From the NCBI RefSeq assembly GCF_000315625.1, contig NW_005434664.1, positions 891,462 to 955,461 on the forward strand: a stretch of 64,000 nt of DNA, given 5' to 3'. Position 1 is the first letter of the stretch. Each line of letters begins with the position of its first letter. This DNA is from Guillardia theta CCMP2712. Taxonomy: Eukaryota > Protista > Cryptophyta. The notes beneath the pieces were generated by a model. It did not search any database. It worked only from the letters and a program-made list of their open reading frames with translations, and was not told the origin of the DNA. Positions 32,567 through 34,009 of this stretch are shown here, one piece after another. Made by a program: the position numbers and the translations under genes.

Positions 32567-32617
32567 CTACTCCTGGAGGACTTGAACCTCCCCGTGGGCC
32601 TCAGACCCTTCAGAGCA
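32567..32617 (-). ncRNA. tRNA-like element (no anticodon arm) downstream of U3 copy A
   Basis: Reverse complement identical to 33959-34009: T arm GGAGG-TTCAAGT-CCTCC, hairpin GGGTC-TGA-GGCCC, acceptor-like stem TGCTCT/GGAGTA. Confidence 0.6.
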
Positions 32618-32623
32618 AAAGAT

Positions 32624-33042
32624 TCACACCTCATCAGAACCGGGTAGCCTCCCTCCTGCAAATGCACGTTGGCAAATGTAGGAACGTTCATCTATGAAGG
32701 TCGAGTGCGAACACTCGAGTCTCCTGCATCCCGCTCAGGAGGAACCCGCGCAATTCGTCTTCTGAGGTGTGAGAGTCGTCTTGATTGGTTCATCAAAACG
32801 AGAGAATGTACTTTAGAAATGATCCTGTAAAGTACTGCACACAGACAGTCAGCATCCCGCACAATCGCACAACGTACACGAAGACGCGAGGGGAGAAAAA
32901 GGATACTGGGATGAGGCGAGAGAGAGAAGAGGAAGCAGCAAGAGAGGGAAGGACAGGGAAGGACAAGGAAGGACAGGAAGCAGAGGGACAGAGTATGAGG
33001 ATCGGCATGATATCTGTGCATAGCGTCTGCTCACCAGTCGTT
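32624..33042 (-). ncRNA. U3: U3 snoRNA copy A, split by a 200-nt spliceosomal intron (exons 33035-33042 and 32624-32834)
   Basis: Spliced 5' end AACGACTG|TACTTTACAGGATCATTTCTAAAG gives GAC box, box A' and box A; boxes C', B, C, D and a 10-bp terminal stem follow; exons identical to copy B. Confidence 0.9.
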
Positions 33043-33066
33043 GATTCTCGCTGTCCTGGGTCAGGC

Positions 33067-33073
33067 TTTTATA
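33067..33073 (-). promoter_or_regulatory. TATA box of U3 copy A
   Basis: TATAAAA about 30 nt upstream of the predicted U3 5' end. Confidence 0.75.
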
Positions 33074-33496
33074 CCCTTCTCCCCGCCATCCCCTACCCCA
33101 CCCCCATGTCATAGCCTTCTACGTTTTACTACCCTTCTTTGGACTACCTCACACCCCCCTGAAGACTACCCCTACCTACCCTAATGATCACTTCTCCACT
33201 AGGGGGCTTCATCGCACGTGAAGTTTGGTCACACGTGCAATACCCCACCCCACCCACCAAATAGTATACAATACCCCTCCATTCTGAACTCATGACCCTC
33301 CCCCTGTTCCTGTTGAGGGGGTTGATCACGTGCGGGGATACTCGTGGGGGTACTAATCCCATCTATGAAATACATGGGAAGACAGGGGTACTACTGTAGG
33401 GAAATGTGGCGTGGGTGGCAAATTGAAAGATGGGTAGGGGTATTGAAGAAGCAGGTTTAGTCATAGGGGTGGGGTAGGGGATGGCGGGGAGAAGGG

Positions 33497-33503
33497 TATA
33501 AAA
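33497..33503 (+). promoter_or_regulatory. TATA box of U3 copy B
   Basis: TATAAAA about 30 nt upstream of the predicted U3 5' end at 33528. Confidence 0.75.
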
Positions 33504-33527
33504 GCCTGACCCAGGACAGCGAGAATC

Positions 33528-33952
33528 AACGACTGGTGAGCAGACGCTATGCAGTGATATCATGCCGATCCTCATACTCTGTCCCCTCCCTGTCCTTCCC
33601 TGTCCTTCCCTGTCCTTCCCTGTCCTTCCCTCTCTTGCTGCTTCCTCTTCTCTCTCTCGCCTCATCCCAGTATCCTTTTTCTCCCCTCGCGTCTTCGTGT
33701 ACGTTGTGCGATTGTACGGGATGCTGACTGTCTGTGTGCAGTACTTTACAGGATCATTTCTAAAGTACATTCTCTCGTTTTGATGAACCAATCAAGACGA
33801 CTCTCACACCTCAGAAGACGAATTGCGCGGGTTCCTCCTGAGCGGGATGCAGGAGACTCGAGTGTTCGCACTCGACCTTCATAGATGAACGTTCCTACAT
33901 TTGCCAACGTGCATTTGCAGGAGGGAGGCTACCCGGTTCTGATGAGGTGTGA
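33528..33952 (+). ncRNA. U3: U3 snoRNA copy B, split by a 206-nt spliceosomal intron (exons 33528-33535 and 33742-33952)
   Basis: Donor GTGAGC 33536, branch CTGAC 33724-33728, acceptor TGCAG 33741; box A' TACTT, box A GGATCATTTCT, C' GAAGACGA 33814-33821, B GAGCGGGA 33840-33847, C AGATGA 33883-33888, D CTGA 33939-33942; stem TCACACCTCA 33804-33813 pairs with TGAGGTGTGA 33943-33952; mature length ~219 nt. Confidence 0.9.
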
Positions 33953-33958
33953 ATCTTT

Positions 33959-34009
33959 TGCTCTGAAGGGTCTGAGGCCCACGGGGAGGTTCAAGTCCTC
34001 CAGGAGTAG
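33959..34009 (+). ncRNA. tRNA-like element (no anticodon arm) downstream of U3 copy B
   Basis: T stem 33985-33989/33997-34001 with loop TTCAAGT; hairpin 33968-33980; acceptor-like stem 33959-33964/34003-34008. Confidence 0.6.

Follow-up and report, generated by a model that had tools for sequence, protein, structure and literature searches.

Probable intron-containing U3 snoRNA genes followed by a putative tRNA mimic in the cryptophyte Guillardia theta

Introduction

Spliced U3 snoRNA has been described as a fungal feature: an intron interrupts 138 of 310 fungal U3 genes, whether such introns were gained once or repeatedly is an open question, and the intron is thought to have no effect on U3 function (Canzler et al., 2017; PMC5832005). 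A pair of U3-like genes in the cryptophyte Guillardia theta CCMP2712 raises the question of whether a U3 gene so far from the fungi can be split in the same way and, if so, how the transcript of such a gene is started, joined and ended. The original prediction placed two head-to-head U3 genes, each interrupted by a spliceosomal intron, within a 64,000-nt stretch of DNA (contig NW_005434664.1, positions 891,462 to 955,461 of the forward strand), which we call the window.

As to the neighbourhood of the pair, a UniRef GUITH entry matches the flanking DM10 protein at 100% identity, and Hanusia phi has a counterpart of the TPR neighbour at 79%; the genome also encodes the nuclear phycoerythrin alpha family. 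Elsewhere, the window contains two blocks ~4.65 kb apart (48683–51471 and 53129–56118) whose ORFs match in length (412 and 467 aa), probably a tandem duplication.

Identity and Arrangement of the U3 Genes

The genes in the window are true U3 snoRNA genes. Run on the genomic sequence, the Rfam U3 model (RF00012) matches at 32629–32841 (minus strand) and 33735–33947 (plus strand), at the positions predicted, with 94.7 bits each (E 1.3e-19), and a third copy scores 93.6 bits; all three exceed the 34-bit cut-off. This third gene (U3-C) lies ~10 kb left of the window on the minus strand (locus L003, 1440–1860; G000:C10 ~881367–881787), and both it and the 3' tRNA mimics described below fall outside the coordinates of the original prediction. 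U3-A and U3-B are arranged head to head on inverted-repeat arms that are 94–99% complementary. An assembly artefact was ruled out for this inverted pair, as A-type and B-type intron alleles both occur in contigs of a probable DNA run.

All U3 boxes are present in order. In U3-B (plus strand), exon 1 (8 nt; 33528–33535, its exact start inferred) holds the GAC box, and exon 2 (211 nt; 33742–33952, from the Rfam match and the sequence) holds box A' (33742–33746), box A (33749–33761), box C' (~33813–33821, deviating from consensus), box B (33840–33850), box C (33882–33888) and box D (33939–33942), together with a perfect 10-bp terminal stem (33804–33813/33943–33952). U3-A carries the same two exons on the minus strand (33035–33042 and 32624–32834), so that the identical exons, the summed length of 219 nt and the terminal stem all agree with what had been claimed. 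Exon 2 of U3-C is identical to that of A and B, and its promoter and 115-nt intron core are unrelated to theirs.

The expected complementarity to the 5' end of 18S rRNA was recovered by computed pairing with the exons tested separately: the start of exon 2 pairs with the organism's own 18S 5' end at −14.3 kcal/mol (8 + 4 bp), and exon 1 alone forms 5 bp with 18S nt 21–25. Between the U3 hinge and the 5' ETS, only G-U-rich matches of 10–13 nt were found, in a purine-rich spacer. By analogy with the family, in which this role is established, mature G. theta U3 would be expected to act as usual in 18S rRNA processing, as a nucleolar, TMG-capped RNP required for A0–A2 cleavage.

We found no description of G. 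theta U3 in the literature searched. A metagenome scan for the U3 of another cryptophyte found none and gave mostly animal-type U3s, the viral collection yielded one, unrelated, match, and no neighbouring U3 was seen when the synteny of DM10 homologues was examined. In three metagenomic contigs, U3 sits within dense clusters of snRNA, 5S, SRP and tRNA genes.

Evidence for a Spliceosomal Intron

The intervening sequences have the coordinates, lengths and GT-AG signals originally given—206 nt in U3-B (33536–33741, plus strand) and 200 nt in U3-A (32835–33034, minus strand)—and share the layout GTGAGC ... CTGAC ... GTGCAG. That of U3-B leads from a GTGAG donor through pyrimidine repeats and a T5 run to a branch site (33720–33728, branch A at 33727) and a CAG acceptor. 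These signals are best read as an intron of the major spliceosome that follows nt 8 and separates the GAC box from box A', a reading that the sequence makes us hold with strong confidence.

The strongest evidence for splicing is copy C, in which the intron core is unrelated but exon 1, the donor, the branch site and the acceptor are all kept. Upstream of exon 2, the two longest words that C has in common with B cover exon 1 with the donor (13 nt) and the branch site (12 nt), and in all three copies exon 1 starts 31 nt after the TATA box, branch A lies 15 nt before the acceptor, the acceptor is YAG and no AG intervenes between branch site and acceptor. By themselves, the splice motifs are no commoner than chance in the window, where splice-like words are common; it is the positional conservation of the signals in copy C that goes beyond chance. 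The spliceosomal reading is further supported by the organism's own snRNAs: U1 pairs with the donor over 6 bp, and U2 forms 7–8 contiguous bp plus 2 more around a bulged branch A. A separate argument, that the introns of A and B diverge as if only the exons were constrained, is weak. The introns differ by only 4 substitutions and 6 gap positions; they are identical at 196 of 200 aligned positions and the identity of A and B runs past the exons into both flanks, as with recent duplication or conversion.

Could mature U3 instead start just upstream of box A' (~33734), with the supposed intron serving as promoter or leader? The unspliced sequence already reaches 94.7 bits, the last 8 nt of the unspliced intron can likewise pair with the 18S 5' end (−19.4 kcal/mol), the abundance of splice-like words leaves room for coincidence, and four runs gave no joint, the 22 raw reads over exon 2 and the 3' flank being too few, with an 8-nt exon 1, to test the junction. 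Yet we judge a start without splicing very improbable, given that the GAC-box octamer and donor are kept at their distance from the TATA box in otherwise unrelated promoters, that branch site and acceptor hold a fixed spacing, that neither a TATA box nor an snRNA element precedes exon 2, and that 122 U3-like 5' motifs of other eukaryotes mostly carry a GAC-like box in front of box A' (GAT in 96), with AG at that place in 0 of 122. Contigs of a probable RNA run extend over the 3' portions of two introns, A and C, as unspliced precursor of the intron-containing genes would. Because the unspliced intron end pairs with 18S, rRNA pairing alone does not force splicing; of the proposed coupling of splicing to ribosome biogenesis, what stands is that all three copies found would need splicing.

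The promoters, too, speak for splicing. The TATA box of U3-B (33497–33503, plus strand) begins 31 nt before exon 1 and that of U3-A lies at 33067–33073 (minus strand); the common spacer (33043–33527) contains both promoters, G/C-rich boxes and CACGTG motifs, with no snRNA-type upstream element in sense orientation. That element, of ~11 nt, stands at −63 to −68 in the U1, U2 and U6 genes of the genome; U3 is without one before either exon, and so no internal snRNA-type promoter would compete with the TATA box. U3-A and U3-B, but not U3-C, have a 9-of-11 match to the reversed element 49 nt upstream of exon 1.

A Putative tRNA Mimic behind U3

Past the terminal stem, ~47 nt stay identical in all three copies. 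Behind U3-B, a short spacer (33953–33959, plus strand) ends in a U4 tract that may become the 3' end of a cut precursor, and an element of ~50 nt (33959–34008) begins 6–7 nt after the U3 stem. Its minimum-free-energy (MFE) fold shows a stem resembling the acceptor stem, a single small hairpin that contains GG, and a T arm (33985–34001) whose loop is canonical; there is no anticodon arm. An identical element follows U3-A (32568–32617, minus strand), and U3-C ends in a variant of its own, followed by a T4 run. All four differences between A/B and C within the element keep the fold, and the similarity of A/B to C ends with the acceptor stem. From this folding model, a tRNA mimic behind U3 seems to us probable.

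The U3 tails by themselves represent two sequence variants only; their folding z-scores are near zero and not significant; their acceptor pairing (10) does not rise above that of swapped strands (9.1 ± 1.15); and the GG lies within the stem of the small hairpin, not in its loop, in the MFE fold.

A real or permuted tRNA gene was ruled out: there is no anticodon arm or cloverleaf, ARAGORN finds no tRNA in the U3 tail and there is no RF00005 match. The top Rfam match of the tail is the mascRNA-menRNA family (RF01684), at 16.2 bits (E 0.66), below its 42.5-bit cut-off. Within the 64 kb, a generic T-arm-plus-acceptor pattern picks out the U3 tails and nothing else; in other loci totalling 135 kb, all its matches are true tRNAs. 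The mimic is absent 3' of U1, U2 and U6, and it was found behind U3 of other eukaryotes at none of 102 sites, where the T-arm matches were two partial ones inside U3 and one true tRNA. A model built from the U3 tail alone recovers only the three U3 genes. Our literature search found no U3 with a tRNA-like RNase P site.

The Mimic behind Histone Genes and a snoRNA Host

From 212 T-loop motif sites in total, 100 were listed and screened, and among the 87 besides U3 we found at least three more mimics, which belong to a histone H3 gene, an H1-like gene and the last exon of a SNORD96-like snoRNA host. Two further T-arm sites were dropped, having no good acceptor. The SNORD96-like box C/D snoRNA (37.4 bits; locus L268, 964–1330, minus strand; G000:C5 ~552660–553030) sits in an apparent GTGAG...CAG intron, and its host is seemingly non-coding, with a last exon that ends in the mimic.

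For the histone genes, all core-histone matches were fetched (H4 genes were not located), and the association with canonical genes is complete: nine of nine intronless H3, H2A and H2B genes and the H1-like gene have a 6-bp stem-loop with the mimic 1–9 nt later, i.e., 10 of the 10 canonical genes checked, and stem-loop and mimic occur in none of seven variant or unrelated loci. In environmental relatives, the strict pattern is present in 13 of 24 H2A/H2B genes; the loop is degenerate in several others, and the element is missing from a few. Divergent H2A–H2B pairs of these relatives share the stem-loop, with some T loops altered; in one H2A gene the stem-loop is kept and the element shortened. 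A long near-perfect inverted repeat, of several hundred bases per arm, lies upstream of a histone H3 gene (locus L265, 1950–2400).

Across the family, the T stem shows covariation in 21 cells that change on both sides, a value that 0 of 500 shuffles reach (the environmental rows having been selected for pairing), mean acceptor pairing is 11.1 against 9.1 ± 1.15 for swapped strands, and the acceptor and T stems stack over 10–15 positions, near the 12 bp of tRNA. When a model trained only on the histone elements was run on 92 kb that included the U1, U2 and U6 loci, the top four of its 18 matches were the snoRNA-host tail and the three U3 tails. The latter took ranks 2–4, with 17.6 bits for A and B (E 0.035) and 13.4 bits for C (E 0.46), under a model that holds the T-arm pairs only and whose E-values are rough. 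On sequence criteria, the U3 tails belong to this histone-linked family of putative mimics.

These results bear on the idea that the intron is real and the 3' tail neutral, homogenised by gene conversion and resembling a tRNA by chance. The copies are indeed alike well beyond their exons, the pattern was noticed post hoc and the folding z-scores lend it no significance. But the chance probability of the pattern within 100 nt of a given point is ~1.5e-4, the similarity of A/B to C stops where the acceptor stem ends, and an independent, histone-trained model picks the element out, so that we hold a chance likeness to be the most improbable of the alternatives considered.

A Proposed Expression Route

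Taken as a whole, we somewhat favour an account in which U3 has the build of a small mRNA gene and is transcribed by polymerase II from a TATA promoter, spliced, and cut at the mimic by an RNase P-type enzyme. RNA polymerase II would start ~31 nt after the TATA box, and the major spliceosome would take out the intron after nt 8, joining the GAC box to boxes A' and A. The transcript would continue into the ~50-nt mimic, where RNase P or PRORP would cut at the 5' foot of the acceptor stem. The pre-U3 would then end in a short U tract, be bound by La/Lsm and be trimmed to the terminal stem. The last steps—an RNase P-type cut leaving a U-tract pre-U3, La/Lsm binding and trimming—we consider only slightly more probable than their opposite, by analogy with the systems compared below.

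Transcription of U3 exon 2 and the tail region is seen in the reads. T5 runs lie in introns A and B, and because T5 or a longer run terminates 25 of 29 tRNA genes, we infer polymerase II. Among the nuclear tRNA genes, most of which end at T5, a second tRNA lies ~20 nt behind the first at one locus, with no terminator between the two—a possible dicistron. Alternatively, U3 might be a polymerase III gene that, as in yeast SNR6, has a TATA box and a downstream B box. Its end would then be the T4 after the terminal stem, and the apparent T arm would be a B box for TFIIIC. The T-arm core does equal a B box, a TATA box near −30 precedes 20 of 30 tRNA genes, 4 of 29 tRNA genes end at T4, and the unit of copy C has no T5 and a T4 after its mimic; spliced polymerase III RNAs also exist, as in fungal U6 (PMC5832005). 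Several features speak against such a gene, which we think distinctly unlikely: besides the T5 runs in introns A and B there is a T4 within exon 2, the box would lie 370–460 nt from the start at a distance that differs between copies, the same element stands behind protein-coding histone genes with stem covariation outside the B-box letters, and RNA reads span the T4 region and the element.

As to the 3' end, in the snRNA loci of G. theta an A-rich 3' box stands behind U1 and U2; U3 is without this box and so needs another end signal. An RNase P-type cut at the mimic would supply one. A PRORP gene is present in the genome, which according to PMC6461891 also has a nuclear RNase P RNA. RNase P measures the acceptor–T stack from the elbow (PMC4919913), and mascRNA is released by an RNase P-type cut (PMC11693755).

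The mimic might, with a real intron, be read by something other than RNase P: by RNase Z cutting behind it, or by a nuclease of the CPSF73 or Integrator type that the mimic positions; it might also act as a terminator or as a roadblock to an exonuclease, or be released as a small RNA with a function of its own. In favour of another reader, the cut site at the mimic is a predicted one, the small hairpin may hide the GG needed for the elbow, some relatives have degenerate T loops, and reads pass through the element—the few at the mimic continue past its end and so derive from uncut RNA. Against it, the stack length in the mimics is close to the tRNA value that RNase P measures (PMC4919913), and the position 1–9 nt after the histone stem-loop and 6–7 nt after the U3 stem is one at which a 5' cut would make the right end. 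We rate another reader as unlikely, though still worth keeping in mind.

If RNase P-type cleavage applies to U3, replication-type histone mRNAs and the snoRNA host RNA would likewise have their 3' ends set by this mimic, which could serve cryptophytes as a general cleavage signal for polymerase II RNAs that are not polyadenylated. We see the chances as evenly balanced for this broadest version, in which cryptophytes use a general RNase P 3'-end route for U3, snoRNA hosts and histone mRNAs, and gained the U3 intron independently of fungi.

Implications

The intron would extend the range of spliced U3 beyond the crown fungi to a lineage far removed from them, with the 5' hairpin again as the site, and would favour repeated insertion into the rRNA-pairing region over a single gain. 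In line with the original prediction, we found no U3 intron outside fungi in the literature searched. The 3' mimic matters more than the intron. We found tRNA mimics cut by RNase P described as 3'-end signals only for vertebrate MALAT1/NEAT1, and for protists the way in which stem-loop histone mRNAs are ended is poorly understood. If the proposed route is true, one mimic would stand for yeast Rnt1 at U3 and for U7 at histone mRNAs, and would serve snoRNA hosts as well; since U3, a snoRNA host and the canonical histone genes are all followed by one element, a cultured alga offers predicted cut sites and a candidate enzyme.

Comparison with Known Systems

Relative to the U3 family (RF00012), the G. 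theta genes share all boxes, the terminal stem, the length of ~219 nt and the complementarity to the 18S 5' end; they differ in being split after nt 8, in a TATA promoter without the snRNA element of the genome and in the tRNA-like 3' tail. With fungal intron-containing U3 (S. cerevisiae snR17a/b) they have in common a GT-AG intron placed in the first hairpin, on its 5' arm, a branch site ~15 nt from a CAG acceptor and recent, near-identical paralogues. Here, however, the host is a cryptophyte, far from Dikarya, and the intron stands before box A', whereas that of S. cerevisiae U3 follows nt 14. The 3' ends differ as well: yeast U3 is ended by Rnt1 at a hairpin, which yields Lhp1/Lsm-bound intermediates (PMC5499572), and G. 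theta U3 would be ended at a tRNA mimic, with a predicted U-tract pre-U3 that resembles those intermediates.

A tRNA-like unit takes part in snoRNA expression elsewhere too. Plant tRNA–snoRNA dicistrons are cut by RNase Z, and trypanosomatid U3 is driven by the A/B boxes of a neighbouring tRNA (PMC7671301, PMC2784804). In those cases the unit is a real tRNA gene, upstream or opposite, whereas G. theta has a truncated mimic that follows the snoRNA on its own strand.

Closer parallels are mascRNA and menRNA of MALAT1/NEAT1 (RF01684; PMC11693755), where a small mimic likewise lies downstream of a non-polyadenylated RNA and has a 7-bp acceptor-like stem, a canonical T loop and a shrunken, GG-bearing hairpin. 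Members of that family have four arms and are cut by both RNase P and RNase Z, after which CCA is added. The G. theta mimic differs in having no anticodon-equivalent stem, a connector of 10–19 nt rather than 26 nt and no upstream triple helix, and it belongs to an alga, where a snoRNA and histone mRNAs carry it. With its predicted cleavage, it would work like mascRNA without being a member of RF01684, and the likeness is likely convergent.

Finally, metazoan histone mRNA 3' ends (stem-loop, SLBP and U7 snRNP; bioRxiv 10.64898/2026.10.14.759114) offer the counterpart to the G. theta histone genes; the same 2026 survey of the 3'-end machinery makes no mention of tRNA, RNase or Guillardia. Both systems place a 6-bp stem-loop soon after the stop codon of canonical, not variant, genes, and where the metazoan gene has the U7-binding downstream element, that of G. 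theta has the mimic.
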